Positions 1,682 to 12,478 of a stretch of 13,233 bases of DNA are shown here, piece after piece. The notes under the pieces are model-generated. The model searched no databases. It was not told where the DNA came from and saw nothing but the letters and a program-made list of their open reading frames with translations. Both the position numbers and the translations under genes were made by a program. Source of the DNA: Salpingoeca rosetta (taxonomy: Eukaryota; Protista; Choanoflagellata); the NCBI GenBank assembly GCA_033442325.1, contig JAWQFM010000025.1:173716-186948 (forward strand), given 5' to 3'. Position 1 is the first letter of the stretch. Each line of letters opens with the position of its first letter.

Positions 1682-4600
1682 ATGCAATGGCCAATGACTG
1701 CGGCTGTGGCCATGCTGCTGGCGTTGGTGGTTGCCACCACGGTGGCCAGCACACAAGCACGCTCACCCAGCGCAAACGCACAAAACGATCAGGTGTGCTG
1801 TGGTGGTGGCGCATTTTGTTTTTCTTGTTTGTTGTTGTCCTGCTGTCCTTGTGTACTTGTTCGTTTCGTGTTGTAGTGTAGTAGTGTGTATTGATTCATG
1901 CAGAATGCATGACCTCGGTCCCATCTTGCCCCTCTCCTGCATACCAACGCGCACGCTGTGGCATCTGCTCACATGCTTGCTTGCAAGCACCTTCACCCCA
2001 ATGCCGTTCTGATAGCTGTGCTCTGACGTGCACGGGACACTGGACAGCATGGTGCGTGTGCTGGAAGTGCACGACGTGCCGTTCTTCCCCAAGCACGGTG
2101 CCAACAACAAGGGGAACAGCAGTCGCAATGACACAACACCTGCAACTGGAAACACAATGACACGCGAAGACATGCTGCCCTCCTTCCTTGTGGACCTATC
2201 CCCGATTCACCGCATGATGGCCGCATTTGGGTGTGGCGATCGAAATGGGGACGGTAGCAGGGAACTGGAGCTGCTTGAGAATGGAGAACACAGGACACCT
2301 CCCGCTCCATCAGGTACAAGGTCCACCAGCACGTACGTGGAGGAGAGGGTGAATGCCATCCGCCGCAACGAGACCATGCTGCCCTTGCAACAACAGTCAC
2401 AGTCGCAACACAGTCGTGTGCGACGGAATGATGACCCTGAAGTGCAGGCAGGGCAGTGCACGCTGGCGAGCGTGGTGGATGGCACGTGCCCTGGCGTCGA
2501 CAACCGTGGAAGGCTCACCATCACCTTGCGCGAGGGTGACTACGTGGACGACAGCACGGATGCAAGTGGGCTACGAGCCATTTCCAGCATCGTTGTCGAC
2601 TTGACTGTGAATGGGCACGTCGAACAAGCACCACTGCGGTGGATTGTGAAAAATGGCAATTGGACGGTGTGCTATACTGTTGTCTTGGATGGTGTGCAAT
2701 ACCCCATATTTCAGTTGAGCGAGCTCAACCCAATGGCACGCGTGAACACGACTCGGATCCGCGACAGCGTGCTGCTTCGGGAAGTGAGCACGAGCGGGTT
2801 TGCTCTCACACATGAGCTCGTCAACTTTGGTTTGAGCAACAATGCCCTCACATCCGTTCCAGACGTTTCTGGCATGACGTCGCTGAGGATCCTCAACTTG
2901 TACAACAACCGCATCCGTCGCATCGCAAAGGACGTTTTCAAGGGCTTACCAGTCCTGCAGCAGCTGCTCCTGGGCGAGAACCGCATTTCTGAGATCGAGT
3001 CACGGGCGTTTGACGACCTCACTCAGTTGCAGGTACTCACCCTGTTTGCCAACGACCTCAGCGCCATCCCCTCCAGCTTGTTCCATCGTCTCACGAGCCT
3101 CACCACGTTGCAGCTACAGCAGAACCCTATCACGCAACTTGATGCCGACGTATTCGCTGGGCTGACAATGCTGGATCACCTCAGCCTGGTGGACACGCTC
3201 CTCACCAGCTTACCAGCAACACTTTTACGAAACACCACCCGACTCACTCGCCTGGAATTGGCGCGTACCTTCATCACAACTCTTGATGAGACAGTCTTCT
3301 CCGGCCTGTTGTGGCTGGACGTGCTGGACCTCTTCAACAACCGACTGACATCGCTGCCACCGCGCGTGTTCAAGGACTTGACGGCGTTGACGTGGCTTGA
3401 CTTGTTTTCAAATGACATCACTTCCTTACCTGGCACGCTGCTGGAGAATTGCGCTCTTCTCCACGCGTTCTTCTGCAACAACAACCAATTGACCGTCCTT
3501 CCAGCCAACCTGTTCGCCAACAACCCAGCGCTGCTTCAGGTTAACTTGGCCAACAACGCCCTTCGTTCCATCGACACCGCCCTCGAATCGGCACAGCTGT
3601 CTTCTTTGCAGTTCCTCGACTTGGAGAACAATCAACTCACCAAGATGCGTCTGTTTCGAGAATTGCCCCGTCTTCATTATGTTGATTTGAGCGACAACCC
3701 CATGAAGGAGCTGCCAGATGTCACACTCACGCCTGCCCTGGACACTCTCCGGCTTCATAATCACGAAATCAAGCACATGAATTTAGCGCCGCTCCTCCGT
3801 CTGTCCAGCCTCACCATACTTGAGCTTGATGCTTCCCCGCAAGCACACTCCAGAGCAGTGTTGACGGACACCAACGTCGCCGACATTGCGCCGCTGTCAA
3901 CCCTCAGCCTTGAGAACGTCGATATCAGCACCGCTGTCCCATCACTTGCTCACCTTCCGTCGCTCAGCCTACGCACGCTTCACTTGGGCTGGTCGGGCGC
4001 CAGCAGCGATGAGCTTCCAATCAGCACCATGTGCGAGTTGTTTGCAAGCAACCTGCATGAGCTCCGCATTGCCAACACGGACTACCGAGTCATCGAACTG
4101 TGCCCCGACAAGACGTTCGACTCGCTCCTTCTCAACGACAACCAGCACCTGCAATCTGTCACCGTCCACAACCCGCTTCGTGAACTCAACGTGTCTGGCT
4201 GCACCCAGCTCACATCCATTGATGCCCCTCCTGTTGATATTCTGGACATCAGCAACACCAACTTCCCACCAACTGGTGCGCTGTGCACGCGGTGGGGCCG
4301 TCGCATCCTCTTCGCACGCAACTTGGTCAGAGACATCGATACACGACAGGCTGTCACAACTGTACGCAACTGCCTTCGGCAAGTGGACGTGTTGGATCTC
4401 TCTGGCAACACGTGGCTAAGTCAGCTGCCAGAGATCAATCGTGCGACAGAGAGAATTATTGTCTTGTCAGACGAAAAACACTTGTCCGCGGATTTCTTCT
4501 TCCTTCCAAACCGCCCCACCCCTCCCATCCTTCAGTTGACCGATGCGCCGATTGAATGTGCGCTTCAGCTGTTCAATCAGGATTTGCGACCAGTGCGTGA

Positions 4601-5335
4601 CAACTTCACATTGACCCCTCAGATTATGTTCTCCTTCCACTGCACGTGTGCGCGCGGTTTCAAGATGACGTCAGGTGGGCGGTGTGTGTTAGACGAGCCA
4701 GATATCGCCGGCATTGCCGCTGCCTCCGTGATTGGCGGCCTTGGCATTGGCCTGCTCATGGCGTGGCTGTCACGCCGCTACCGGGGCCTCACCAAGCGCA
4801 TTGGTCTGCAGGAGCAGCTGCTGGTGGAGCGAGACGAGGAGGTGATGGCGCTGAAGAAGGCGTGGGAGATTGAGTACAATGAGCTGAGGATGATCAAGCG
4901 AGTGGCTGCGGGTGCCTTTGGCGTGGTGTTCAAGGCAGAGTGGGACACGGTGATGGTGGCAGTCAAAGTGCTGCAGCAAGGGGTGATGATGTTCGACGAG
5001 AGCACGGTGCTTGAGTTTGAAAAGGAGGTGGAGTTTTTGCAGCGCACACGCCACCCCAACGTGGTGCGGTTCTTTGGCGCGGGCACCGACCCCAACGGCA
5101 GCCCGTTCCTGGTGCTGGAGTTTGTGGCCATGGGATCACTCAAAGATCTGTTGGGCAAGGACATGGAACAGGTGTTGATGGAAGTGAGGAGCAGGAAGGT
5201 CGAGGAGAGCAGCAACGGCAGTGTCAGGGATGATGTGAACAGTGTGTTGGATTTGAAGCTGCGGCTGCTTCGCGACGTCGCCAGTGGGATGGCTTTTATC
5301 CACAGCCTCGACCAGATGCACCGGTAAGTGGGATA

Positions 5336-6551: not shown

Positions 6552-6771
<220 letters not shown>

Positions 6772-6789: not shown

Positions 6790-9700
6790 ATGTCCACGCC
6801 AAAGCCAACAACTGCAGCCACCACAACCACCACAACAGCAGCAGCGCCCATCTGCACGGATGGGGTGAGCACCTCTGCCATCAAGCGGTTCATGTCGCAG
6901 ATCAAGGATTATCACCCCAACAACTATGAGGAGGTGACCACATACGATGCGTGCCTTAAGCCTGTGCTCCACCGCACGAAGGAATGGAAGTGTTCGTACA
7001 TCGACCTGCTGCGCAGAACCAAACCAGAGGAAGTGGGACCAGCCACTGTGTTCGTGTCGCACGCATGGCAGTACAAGATCTCCGACGTCCTCACCACCAT
7101 GCTGGAGTACGCCGAGGAGGAGGAGGAGAAAAAGCGCAAGGATGAAGATGGAACCAAGAAGGAGACGTTCTTCTGGTTTGACCTCTTCTGCAACAACCAG
7201 CACAAAGAATCGCGCATGGGCCTGTCGCCAGAACAGTGAGTTGCGTGTGTTTGTTTGTTTGTTTGTTTGTTTGTGTGTGTGTGTGTGTGTCTGTGCGTGT
7301 GTGGGTCTGTGCGTGTGCGTACAGTGCTTCACCAGACGTGTGCATTTCATCTTGCCACCTTAACGCACTCACACACACACACACGCACACACACACACAC
7401 ACACACGCACACACGCACACACATACGTGTCATGGCAGGATTGGCGCCCCGTTCAAGAACGCCATTGCATCCATTGGCAAGGTGCTGCTTGTGCTGACGC
7501 CATGGAACAACCCCGTCCCACTGACACGCGCGTGGTGCTTGTGGGAGATCTTCTGCGCCATCAGCCAGAGCAGTGATGACGTCGGATTGGAGATCAGACT
7601 GCCGCAACACCAGCGCACGAAGCTGAGGGAAGCTGTTGTTGATAGCTTTGACGCCGTCACCAACATGCTGGTTGAGGTGCAAGCGGAGAAGGCAGGCGCA
7701 AGTGTCCCAGCAGACAAGGAGATGATCTTCCGGGCGATTGAGGACACTGTGGGCTTCGCTGGAGTGAACAAGGCGGTGAAAGGACAGATGCGCGCCTGGT
7801 GTTTGACGATGGCAAGGTCATTCGTGAAGGAGCTGGAAGACTTGGGTGACCACAACGGAGAGCAGTACTCGTTGCTGTGCAGTCGAGTTGGAGCAGTCAT
7901 GCTCAGTTTTGGCGAACATGATGCTGCCATGAGGTTTCACAAGAAGAGCCTGAAGGCTTTGCGCGACCAGTTTGGGGAAACACATCCATTCACAGCAACT
8001 GCGTACCACCACATTGGCAACGTGCACGACAAGAAGGGTGAGTACGATCGTGCCATCGAGAACTTTGAGAAAGCACTCAAGGTCCAGTGTGACACCCTTG
8101 GTGAGAACCACTCCTACACGGCAGCCATCTATCACAGCTTGGGGCTGACGTATCATAACAGGGGAGAGTACGATCGCGCGCTCCACTTTTACAAGAAGGA
8201 CCTCCATATTACACTCAGCGCACATGGCGAGAACCATCCTTCCACGGCGACTGTGTATCACAATTTGGGCCAGGTGGTCCACAAACAAGGAAAGTACAAT
8301 GAAGCGACTGAGTTCTACAAGAACAGCTTGCAGATCAAGCTGGACACGCTGGGCGAGACGCACCCATCCACAGCAACTACGTACCACAACCTCGGCCAAG
8401 TGTTTCAGAGCAAGGGCGAGCAACAACGCGCAATCGACCATTACACCAAGGCCTTGAAGGTCATGCGTGAGACCTTGGGCGAGGGACACCCCACCACCGC
8501 AACCGTGCTCAGCAACTTGGGCGACGTGCACAGCAGCAGTGGTGAGCTTGACCGAGCGGTTGCATACTTCAAGAAGGCGTTGCAGATTAACATGGACACG
8601 CTTGGCAAGAAGCATCCTTCATACGCAGCCACGTCCCACAACTTGGGGCGAGCGTACGACAAACAGGGCAGGCATGATTGTGCGATCGAGCTCTACGCGC
8701 AAAGCCTGCAGGCAATGGTGGACACGCTGGGAGAGAACCATCCGTCCACCGCAACCGTGTGCCTCAGCCTTGGCGATGCGTACACGAGGAAAGCAGCGTA
8801 TGACCGTGCAATGCATTATTACAAGCGGGGTTTGACCATCTTCCTGGACACATGCGGAGAGAAGCATCCTTCCACCGCTCTAGCGCACGATCACGTGGGC
8901 AATTTGTATGTCAGCAAAGGCGAGCATGCGCGTGCCATTGAGCACTTCAAGAAGGCGCTGCACATCAACATCGATACGCGTGGTGAGCAGCATGCCTTCA
9001 CCTCGGCCACTTATTACAGCTTGGGCAGTGCGTATTACGAGACGCACCAGTATGATCTTGCAGTTGAACACCTCAATCAGGCCCTTCTTGCCGGGAAGCA
9101 CGAATCCACACCCGCCATTTTCCGCCAGCTGGGCAACGCGTATTACAAGAAGGGCGAATACGACCGAGCGATCGACCACTTCAACAAGGCACTGCGGATC
9201 AAGTTGGACACTGTTGGCGAGATGCACGCCTCCACTGCCGCCATCCTCCACGACCTGGGGGACATGTACATCAGCAAGGGCGAGTGTGACCGCGCCATTA
9301 ACTACTTTGAGAGGGCTCTCGACATCAAGGTGCAAACCCTTGGTGAGAAGCACAAGTCCACAGCGACTACATACAACAGCTTGGGCAGCGTGTATGAACG
9401 CAAGGGCGAGTACGATCGCGCTATCCACTGCTACACCAAAGACCTCGAGATCGCGCTCAACACGCTCGGTGACAAGCATCCGTCCACGGCAACGGCATAT
9501 CACAATTTGGGCGATGTGTACGAGAGCAAGGGCGAGTACAAGTTGGCCATGGAAAACTACGAGCGGAGCATTCAAATCAAAGTGGCCACGCTGGGCGAGA
9601 AGCACGCGTCTCTAGCAAGGACGCTGAACAACCTTGGCAGTGTGTATCACGCCCAAGGCGAATGCGCTCGCGCGCTGGAGTGCTTCGAAAAGGCGCTGCA

Positions 9701-10202
9701 TATCAAAGTTGACACACTTGGCGAGAAGCATCCTTCCACAGGAATCACGCACGGGTACTTGGGGAGCGTGCATAGTGAAATGGGCAGTTATGAAGGTGCA
9801 ATCGAGCACTTCCAGAACGCACTGCAGATCCAGGTGAACACGCTGGGAGAGAAACACACGGACACGGCAACCACATATCACTACTTGGGCACCGCGTATG
9901 CTGACAAAGGCGAGCATGACCGTGCCATCGAATGCTTCAGGAAGGCGCTGCAAATCAACATGGACGCGCTCGGACCTGACCACCTGTCCATCGCGTTCAC
10001 CTCAAACAGCATCGGCAAGACCTTCGCCAACCTGTATGATTTCGGCAATGCAATTCCGCACATCAGCCGGGCCGTTGACATCTTTCACGCGAGGCTTGGA
10101 CCCCGTCATCCAGAAACAATGCAGGCGGTCAAATGCCTCGAGAATGTGCGACAAGCCGCGCGTTCAAGTTCAAAAGTGTCACTGCACCAATCCACACTGT
10201 GA
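6790..10202 (+). CDS. TIR/HET-like domain + 18 kinesin-light-chain-type TPRs, ~1069 aa (exons 6790-7235, 7439-10202)
   Basis: A phase-2 intron (CA|gtgagt ... ggcag|G) joins the 149-aa ORF to the 988-aa ORF in frame (3210 nt total). N-terminal motifs: VFVSHAW, FFWFDLFCNNQH, VLLVLTPW, LTRAWCLWE. Eighteen repeats with consensus PSTATxYHNLGxxYxxKGEYDRAIxxFxKALxIxxDTLGEKH span 7860-10109. Confidence 0.9.
7245..7426. repeat. Intron with (GTTT)n/(GT)n at 7245-7320 and complementary (CA)n at 7363-7426
   Basis: Directly visible inside intron 7236-7438. Confidence 0.9.
7860..10109 (+). repeat. Coding tandem array of 18 TPR units (17 x 126 nt + 1 x 108 nt)
   Basis: Repeats counted from the translation; 17x126+108=2250 nt matches the span exactly. 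Confidence 0.9.
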
Positions 10203-10204
10203 TT

Positions 10205-10219
10205 GTGTGTGTGGGGGGG

Positions 10220-10292
<73 letters not shown>

Positions 10293-11182: not shown

Positions 11183-12478
11183 ATGAGAATGGTGGGGTGC
11201 CTGCAGGCACGTGGGGTTCTGCTGCTCCCCGTGCTGCTGGTGGCGGCGGCAGTGTGCTGGATGCCGTTTGACAGCAGCGTTGCTGGAGAGGTGACGCTGG
11301 AGGAGGACGATGCGGGCGCGTTTCACATCAACACGAGCGATCCCATGAGCCAGCCGGTGTTTCTGAACGGCCTGAATGTGCACGATACCCTCAGCATGTT
11401 GATGAGCACCGTGTCGGCGCAGCAGAGCCTCAACGCTGCGCAGGAGGGCGTGATCGATGCACAACGGAGTGCGATTTCGGCTCAGCAGAGGGCGATTGAC
11501 CGTGTCCGTGGCGAAGTGTGCACCCCAAGTGCCACGACGATTGGACAACTGAGCTCAACCACCAACAAGTGGCTTGGCGGTGTGTTGGCAAACAATGGTT
11601 TCATCTATGCCGCACCGTACTACGCATCCTCTGTGCTCATCATCGACCCCAGCACCAACACCATCGATACGACTACCATCTCCGACCTTGGAACTGACTC
11701 GGGAAAATGGGCGGGTGGTGTGCGGGCTGACAACGGCCTCATTTACATGTTCTCTTCACGAAGGGAAACGATGCTTATCATTGACCCAAGTACCAACACC
11801 GTGGACACATCAAGCATCCACTCGCTTGGCTCCGGTGAAAAAAAATGGTTTAGCGGGGTTGTGGCCAGCAACGGCCTCATCTTTGGCATCCCATACTTTG
11901 CAACCTTCGTGCTGATCATTGATCCCGAGACCAACACAGCTGACACCACCACGCTGTCCGGACTAATGAGCCAGAGGTACAAGTGGTTTGAGGGGGTGCA
12001 AGCAGACAATGGTTTAATTTACTGCATTCCCGTCTCAGCTTCCTCCGTTCTAATCATTAACCCAGACACCTTGGCGATGGACCTCACAACCATTAGTGGT
12101 CTGGGAACACACGTTAAGTGGCGTGGCGGGGTGCTTGCACACAATGGCCTCATCTACACCATTCCCACTTACTCTGCGACGACACTGGTTATCAACACCT
12201 CCACCAACGTCACTGACGTGCTTGTTGTTGTAGATGCGATGAGCTCTTCGAAGTGGATTGGCGGTGTGCTCGCACCCAACGGCAACGTCATCGGTATCCC
12301 ATACAGGTCCTCATCAGTCCTCATCTTCGACCCAAGCAATAACACCACCGACACTACGACTGTTAACGACCTTGGGGGCGACAACAAATGGTGGGATGGC
12401 GTGCTCGCCCAAAACGGCCTCATCTATGGCATCCCACGCGATGCTGAATCTGTCCTCGTCATCGACCCAGGGTGCTGA
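11183..12478 (+). CDS. Intronless secreted protein, 431 aa: signal peptide, short beta-rich segment, coiled-coil stalk, 7-bladed beta-propeller (KWxGGVLAxNGxIYxIP repeats)
   Basis: Hydrophobic N-terminus VLLLPVLLVAAAVCW; heptads VSAQQSL/NAAQEGV/IDAQRSA/ISAQQRA/IDRV; seven 45-46-aa repeats KWxGGVLAxNGLIYxIPxxAxSVLIIDPxTNTxDTTTIxxLG (the last is truncated after IDPGC). The propeller fold is inferred from the four-strand pattern. Confidence 0.85.
   Translation: MRMVGCLQARGVLLLPVLLVAAAVCWMPFDSSVAGEVTLEEDDAGAFHINTSDPMSQPVFLNGLNVHDTLSMLMSTVSAQQSLNAAQEGVIDAQRSAISAQQRAIDRVRGEVCTPSATTIGQLSSTTNKWLGGVLANNGFIYAAPYYASSVLIIDPSTNTIDTTTISDLGTDSGKWAGGVRADNGLIYMFSSRRETMLIIDPSTNTVDTSSIHSLGSGEKKWFSGVVASNGLIFGIPYFATFVLIIDPETNTADTTTLSGLMSQRYKWFEGVQADNGLIYCIPVSASSVLIINPDTLAMDLTTISGLGTHVKWRGGVLAHNGLIYTIPTYSATTLVINTSTNVTDVLVVVDAMSSSKWIGGVLAPNGNVIGIPYRSSSVLIFDPSNNTTDTTTVNDLGGDNKWWDGVLAQNGLIYGIPRDAESVLVIDPGC

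Follow-up and report, generated by a model that had tools for sequence, protein, structure and literature searches.

The window considered here is a stretch of 13,233 nucleotides (nt) from the genome of the choanoflagellate Salpingoeca rosetta (G000:C25:173716-186948, in a genome assembly of 55.4 Mb); the term refers to the whole of the DNA that was analyzed. It contains an expressed two-exon gene for a cytosolic protein of 1069 amino acids, in which an N-terminal domain is joined directly to a long array of tetratricopeptide repeats (TPRs). Judged from predicted structures, the N-terminal domain is a member of the fold superfamily that comprises TIR domains and nucleoside deoxyribosyltransferases. 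We lean toward the view that it represents a distinct, Pfam-less clade of the TIR superfamily with motifs that are most HET-like, and that the protein, a TPR fusion without a nucleoside triphosphatase (NTPase), may be a TPR-gated N-glycosidase of the TIR type with a role in conflict or immunity.

In a homologue search, the closest database proteins to the window gene were all S. rosetta gene models, and the annotated protein of the gene itself was absent among the returned matches. For this reason, structures were predicted for the paralogue P0001, which is 83% identical to the window protein overall and 84% identical in the core. The features of the gene, all on the forward strand, are as follows.

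6790 to 7235, forward: exon 1, 446 nt, from Met1 through the second base of codon 149; RNA contigs stop at 7234 or 7235.
7236 to 7438, forward: GT-AG intron of 203 nt, with an RNA depth of 0.
7439 to 10202, forward: exon 2, coding for the remaining TIR-like domain, a helical extension and 18 TPR units, and ending in the stop codon TGA at 10200-10202.
7027 to 7862, forward: predicted TIR-like core (residues ~80-290), interrupted by the intron and supported by the P0001 core model, Foldseek, VIA, and hhalign.
7048 to 7068, forward: betaA motif VFVSHAW (S90, H91, W93), with S in 97%, H in 96%, and W in 98% of 173 domain instances.
7174 to 7203, forward: betaB motif WFDLFCNNQH (W129, D131, Q137), with W in 97%, D in 95%, and Q in 94% of the same instances.
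7527 to 7547, forward: alphaC motif RAWCLWE, with R, W, C, and E each in 97% of the instances.
7929 to 10199, forward: TPR superhelix of 16 canonical 42-amino-acid units of the kinesin light chain type, one 36-amino-acid unit, and a C-terminal cap.

Fold and conservation of the N-terminal domain

The predicted structure of the N-terminal domain is TIR-like. AlphaFold2 modeled residues 20-300 of P0001 with a predicted local distance difference test score (pLDDT) of 87.4 and a predicted template modeling score of 0.87, and the core by itself with a pLDDT of 89.9. Secondary structure elements in these models follow the order betaA-alphaA-betaB-alphaB-betaC-alphaC-betaD-alphaD(-betaE-alphaE), as in the flavodoxin-like, three-layer alpha/beta TIR fold. 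When the longer model was compared by VIA with 48,161 PDB representatives, the top 29 entries were nearly all TIR, ThsB, SEFIR, or nucleoside 2-deoxyribosyltransferase (NDT) structures, with Z scores of 4.8-6.9 over model residues ~64-260. Searches with the core gave a unanimous list of matches that cover most of each TIR domain. Specifically, the top 24 Foldseek rows were all TIR (best E value 1.8e-3, probability 0.97), while VIA returned a Z of 7.5 to RPP1 and RUN1, with 125-126 residues aligned, and of 7.0-7.4 to the SARM1 TIR, with 108-114 of 131-140 residues aligned; all 50 of the entries listed were TIR, ThsB, NDT, or the uncharacterized structure 7m5h. The first-pass annotation of this DNA had read the domain as TIR/HET-like from the letters alone; a flavodoxin- or TIR-like fold, on which that reading depended, is what the models and structure searches with P0001 show.

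Conservation within the family is concentrated in a limited set of residues. Against a profile derived from ten homologues, the window protein being left out, the spliced N-terminal domain scored 403 bits, so that the match is not due to chance. Mean column identity in a diverse family alignment (A2) is 28%. Against this background, S90, H91, W93, W129, D131, Q137, P170, W171, P174, R179, W181, C182, E185, D241, and I245 are each retained in 94-98% of 173 domain instances; W181 is present in 168 of them, and so is E185. The codon for Glu185 occupies 7545-7547, and W181-x-x-x-E185 is the putative catalytic pair, which we take to be the equivalent of W638/E642 of SARM1 and of the WCLxEL of plant TIRs. 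Enzymatic TIRs are marked by a Glu at the start of alphaC that is preceded, four positions earlier, by an aromatic residue, and W181 and E185 provide both. From the alignment, such a pattern would fit a pocket better than a mere interface. Every motif position given in the first-pass annotation was correct on recomputation, and the Glu that it singled out is the one kept in 168 of the 173 instances and aligned with the TIR alphaC Glu.

A relation to TIR is also detectable by profile comparison. When the 173 family domains were aligned by hhalign with 18 Pfam-positive TIR_2 domains of the same genome, the result was a probability of 74%, a P value of 2.8e-5, and a score of 38.1; the aligned region spans 99 columns, betaA through betaD. 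Among the controls, the TIR alignment when reversed scored 16.2 and 20 column shuffles scored 9.4-14.4, with P values of 0.1-0.7. The alignment matches FVSHAW to the betaA F-I-S-Y, WFD to the betaB w-l-D, VLLVLTPW to betaC, and WCLWE to the alphaC C-x-x-E, and this last pairing places Glu185 at the position of the TIR catalytic Glu. In addition, TIR_2 was the most frequent of the Pfam families with sub-threshold matches, in 6 of 59 domains (best E 0.0089), and ThsB models gave sub-threshold matches in PADLOC. Other searches returned little. Pfam at E<=10 found nothing relevant on either exon or in six full homologous N-terminal domains, and in the PDB, a single sequence and two profiles as queries retrieved just KLC TPRs and, as the one non-TPR match of note, PdTIR (3h16, E 0.15). 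None of the 52 TIR_2 loci of the genome overlaps a listed family locus. Some Pfam-positive TIR_2 domains (L021, L022, L028, L030, L033, and L038) carry a betaA motif of the form F-x-S-Y-x-W, for example FLSYTWKY. This motif resembles both the FVSHAWQY of the TIR-like/TPR family and the LSYxW of HET, so these domains may be intermediates.

Fungal HET domains carry three blocks: [LIV]SYxW, WIDxxCINQ, and RxWxxQE. The window protein contains FVSHAW, WFDLFCNNQ, and RAWCLWE in the same order. About 11.5 kb downstream, two genes lie in tandem, PTSG_09132 and PTSG_09133, each with the UniRef name "Heterokaryon incompatibility domain" (L050, G000:C25:197500-203500, open reading frames [ORFs] 404-2236 and 3303-4868). 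One of the pair has VSHRW, LWIDWACINQ, and RPWCLVE and matches Pfam HET at an E of 0.0095, which is below threshold. The downstream copy retains VSHRW, WIDWACINQ, and WCLVE; the upstream copy has VSHHH, WIDWPCIDQ, and WCLVQ, with Trp and Glu substituted. No other relatives of these two genes were found in the word-indexed database. An hhalign comparison of the family with these two sequences only did align the three blocks, at a P of 0.15, which is not significant. A six-frame search of the genome with Pfam HET gave no match, which is weak evidence given that controls were silent too. Dyrka et al. 2014 (PMC4986451) reported homologues of HET from green algae, haptophytes, and stramenopiles as well as from choanoflagellates, with a sequence from S. 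rosetta among them. Judging by motifs, a relation of the N-terminal domain to HET is plausible, if unproven, and the relation to TIR is better supported.

The TPR array and the gene family

The N-terminal domain extends over residues 20-312, and the TPRs begin at about residue 313 and continue to residue 1069. Pfam matches to the array include TPR_12 (E 4e-183), TPR_10 (E 1e-130), and TPR_NPHP3, and the TPR structures of KLC1 and KLC2 were the only PDB sequence matches at the array start. The unit register, with 16 canonical units, one 36-amino-acid unit, and the cap, agrees with the count of 18 made in the first-pass annotation. Tandem Repeats Finder detected no array in the DNA that encodes the repeats; they have diverged at the DNA level, which indicates that they did not arise by recent intragenic amplification.

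The boundaries of the two parts leave no space for an NTPase between them. Furthermore, a Walker A motif (GxxxxGK[ST]) occurs nowhere in the 1069 amino acids, and neither NACHT nor NB-ARC was among the Pfam matches listed for the window protein or for 16 relatives, which were scanned partly or wholly. With neither room nor a P-loop, a hidden NTPase can be ruled out, in line with the first-pass annotation, which saw no Walker A/B motif. It had also anticipated that automatic annotation would recognize only the repeats, and relatives are indeed called "TPR repeat protein" or "Kinesin light chain 3."

Relatives of the N-terminal domain are numerous. An exhaustive profile search of 1.84 billion cluster representatives, the public clusters being defined at 50% identity, returned 10,548 with a cutoff of E<=1e-3, of which 2,486 reached E<=1e-30, and family members are mostly from protists. 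The named members belong to S. rosetta, S. infusionum, and a chytrid, in which one is labeled "Kinesin light chain 3," and structure-based neighbors with recorded taxa fall mainly in oomycete, haptophyte, and chlorophyte clusters. A search of a language-model-feature atlas gave no usable match. In the S. rosetta genome, the profile search identified 127 exon pieces that correspond to ~63 genes, which supplies the paralogue count that the first-pass annotation had called for. The clade has no Pfam model, and no characterization of it was found in the literature searched.

In nearly all relatives, the N-terminal domain is fused directly to TPRs. Variants have two or three domain-TPR modules per protein, a PH domain or a RanBP zinc finger at the N terminus, or ANK repeats in place of the TPRs. 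Among the closest paralogues, the N-terminal domain is 83% identical and the first five TPR units are ~48-50% identical, and array sizes among paralogues are about 5, 7, 9, 14.5, 15, and 18 units. The TPR arrays thus diverge and change unit number faster than the N-terminal domain. A conserved effector with a diversified sensor is a pattern of immune-type receptors, although the argument is correlative. The parts themselves, a TIR-like effector and a TPR array, are of known kinds, and it is their obligate fusion without an NTPase that is unusual. A family copy at G000:C17:74972-75984 (reverse strand) lies inside or beside an uninterrupted open frame reported as 9024 amino acids. Another, at G000:C23:1190652-1191898 (forward strand), has an in-frame TAA in exon 1 and is possibly a pseudogene; ~2 kb from it, at 1193998-1194303 (reverse strand) of the same contig, there is a sub-threshold TIR_2 match of 26.9 bits (cutoff 28).

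Splicing, transcription, and flanking sequence

Translation of the gene from the ATG at 6790 requires removal of one intron, with a donor GTGAGT that starts at 7236 and an acceptor AG that ends at 7438. Joining 7235 to 7439 yields 3210 nt in frame, that is, 1069 amino acids and the TGA. Exon 1 codes for the family-specific N-terminal helical part, followed by the TIR-like betaA, alphaA, and betaB. Logan contigs from two runs in two studies cover 6785/6926-7234 and then 7439-7568/9 without a mismatch and with a depth of 0 at 7236-7438, and coverage by raw stranded RNA-seq reads (X23) extends over both exons and is absent from the intron. An RNA contig of 2698 nt runs from 7547 to beyond 8000 (its first 454 nt were aligned), which is consistent with exon 2 being a single continuous exon. 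These transcripts join the two exons exactly where the first-pass annotation had placed the splice. Annotated models of paralogues read ...PEQ|IGAPF... over the same exon junction, and nearly all of the ~63 paralogues have an intron at the same profile position (~112-118). A pseudogene or misassembly can be dismissed in view of the transcripts and the intact ORF.

The 5' arm of the intron, (UG)n and U-rich, is complementary to the (CA)n-rich 3' arm, and the whole folds as one long hairpin at -93.9 kcal/mol (z of -2.58), a stability reached by none of 200 shuffles. If formed as modeled, the hairpin would juxtapose both splice sites. The five closest paralogues (L051-L055) have introns at the same position with the same arms, which when translated read VCVC... 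and then HTHT.... At the junction itself (residues 149-150; 7234-7442), the subclade that includes the window protein, P0001, and P0003 carries Q-I in place of the W-W seen in 86% of the family, so that a strongly conserved pair was lost exactly at the split codon.

Similar repeats occur around the gene. The G+C content of the window is ~55%, and long microsatellites of the (CA)n/(TG)n kind are present. One (CA)n tract, ~215 nt in length (6556-6770), ends 20 nt upstream of the start codon, and a (TG)n tract (10203-10290) begins directly 3' of the stop codon; the gene is therefore flanked by strand-complementary microsatellites. Elsewhere in the window, a long open frame at 2028-5327 (forward strand) matches LRR_8 over at least seven stretches and also contains a cEGF-like segment and a Tyr/Ser-Thr kinase N-lobe. 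From these matches, it is read as an exon of a leucine-rich repeat receptor kinase that continues beyond the end of the ORF. A 431-amino-acid ORF at 11183-12478 (forward strand) matches no Pfam family above threshold.

Proposed function and its rivals

The N-terminal domain shares much with enzymatic TIRs. RPP1, RUN1, SNC1, SARM1, ThsB, AbTir, and the SPARTA TIR-APAZ have the same betaA-to-betaD topology, and in the hhalign comparison the betaA F-x-S-[HY], the Asp after betaB, and the alphaC W-C-L-x-E are held in common. Yet the domain is larger, at ~290 amino acids compared with ~140, and has no Pfam TIR or TIR_2 match above threshold. It adds a conserved 60-amino-acid helical part at the N terminus, a helical extension at the C terminus, and a long insert in the BB region with N-Q and W-W motifs, and TPRs follow it directly, without NB-ARC, SAM/ARM, or any other partner. 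Fungal HET (PF06985) is similar in block order, in its N-terminal position before repeat arrays, and in its large and variable gene families. The HET domain is about 220-240 amino acids long (PMC12881547), an extended size similar to that of the window domain, and a remote relation to TIR with a conserved Glu has been proposed for it (PMC4986451, PMC9153377). While fungal HET occurs alone or as HET-NACHT-WD40/TPR, the window protein has TPRs directly after the domain.

Other extended TIR-like families offer precedents. TeTIR is a Pfam-less family with a catalytic Glu that has been shown to be an NADase and is always followed by a NACHT ATPase (doi 10.64898/2026.09.21.753143), and DUF4062, with the same Glu, is likewise a demonstrated NADase (doi 10.64898/2026.05.01.722283). 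These families, which include TEP1, NWD1/2, NPHP3, and bacterial Swarozyc, resemble the window domain in being extended, in being missed by standard models, and in keeping the Glu. They are coupled to TPR_12-type or WD40 repeats, and the window TPRs also match TPR_NPHP3. However, they are also coupled to NACHT or phage defense partners, and no NACHT is present in the window protein; they have an RWG loop where the window family has RAWCLWE. DUF4062 was not among the commonest sub-threshold Pfam families of the family domains. Membership in TeTIR or DUF4062 was rejected given the lack of such a Pfam signal and of NACHT. The plant TNP/XTNX proteins (TIR-NBARC-TPR) and other STAND NLRs follow the same logic of an N-terminal TIR effector and a C-terminal TPR sensor, but the central NTPase that defines the class (TNL, TNP, HNWD, and TeTIR-NACHT) is absent from the window protein. 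Kinesin light chain shares the 42-amino-acid TPR_12/TPR_10 units. It has 6 TPRs and a heptad-repeat N terminus that binds the heavy chain, whereas the window protein has 18 units and a TIR-like N terminus, and so it is not a kinesin light chain.

In the reading that we favor, the N-terminal domain would be a TIR-type N-glycosidase that acts on NAD+ or a related nucleotide. The TPR solenoid would keep the domain inactive, and a ligand or self-association would cluster N-terminal domains into active oligomers. The output could be depletion of NAD+ or a nucleotide signal, perhaps in the context of conflict, immune, or self/non-self recognition. A broader version, which is tentative and to which we give distinctly less credence, is that the family represents a STAND-independent class of cytosolic sensor-effectors, in which the TPR solenoid reads a ligand directly and activates a fused HET/TIR-type NADase. 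Such proteins would be the dominant intracellular immune or allorecognition receptors of choanoflagellates and many other protists and an evolutionary bridge between fungal HET and canonical TIR.

Several points weigh against the favored reading. The fold model is of a paralogue with 83% identity and not of the window protein itself. Structural scores were middling (Z of at most 7.5; Foldseek E of 1.8e-3 at best), and a Z below 8 may reflect a common arrangement. Many animal TIRs retain the fold yet serve only as adaptors. RNA-seq depth was modest. In the window exons, six homologues, and 59 domains, Pfam TIR (PF01582) and TIR_2 (PF13676) stayed below the gathering threshold, and Pfam HET (PF06985, cutoff 22.5 bits) had no match at E<=10 in 65 family domains, which confines the HET link to the level of three motifs. 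The first-pass description of the domain as TIR/HET-like is accordingly sustained for the TIR fold and the remote TIR_2 profile match, and not for membership in Pfam TIR, TIR_2, or HET.

Three other explanations were considered. The N-terminal domain could be a noncatalytic TIR-like assembly module, a homotypic scaffold in the style of MyD88, MAL, and TLR that recruits partners to a target bound by the TPRs. The structure searches also matched the TIRs of MyD88, MAL, TRIF, TRAM, and the IL-1R family at similar Z scores, and an adaptor role was originally proposed for HET (Dyrka et al. 2014, PMC4986451). Nevertheless, we find a scaffold unlikely: some 16 polar and aromatic residues (W-x-x-x-E, S-H, D, and N-Q among them) are 94-98% kept at ~28% overall identity, which is typical of a pocket and not of an interface, and the best structural matches are the enzymatic TIRs RPP1, RUN1, SARM1, SPARTA, ThsB, and AbTir, together with NDT. 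It is similarly doubtful that the domain is a true member of the fungal HET family that serves allorecognition between choanoflagellate cells or colonies instead of pathogen sensing. The order of the three blocks, the two HET-named genes downstream with related motifs, and the choanoflagellate, haptophyte, stramenopile, and green algal homologues of Dyrka et al., which parallel the recorded taxa of the family, would all agree with such membership, but Pfam HET was silent in all 65 domains and, along with its controls, in the six-frame search, and the alignment with the HET-annotated neighbors reached a P of only 0.15.

The protein might instead have a housekeeping function, either as a TPR scaffold or as a cargo adaptor that resembles kinesin light chain, or it might be a nucleotide salvage enzyme similar to NDT or DNPH1, in each case with no conflict role. 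Database names of relatives (kinesin light chain or TPR protein) and the presence of NDT enzymes among the top structural matches speak for this explanation. We regard it as very improbable, since a TIR-like domain replaces the heptad-repeat N terminus that defines kinesin light chains, and since neither ~63 divergent paralogues with variable repeat number nor lineage-specific expansions across protists suit a housekeeping function.

Domains of the TIR type that cleave NAD+ are an immune currency shared by bacteria, plants, and animals. It was not until 2026 that the overlooked TIR-like families TeTIR and DUF4062 were demonstrated to be NADases. The family described here has more than 10,000 clusters, with ~63 genes in S. 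rosetta, which is among the unicellular organisms most closely related to animals, and its members are labeled just "TPR" or "kinesin light chain." Because S. rosetta is genetically tractable, the hypothesis of a TPR-gated N-glycosidase is directly testable. If the N-terminal domain is active, a major and mostly protist class of NADase effectors would be gained, along with a natural case of TIR-type activation without a STAND ATPase and a tractable handle on the biochemistry of the HET cell death domain.

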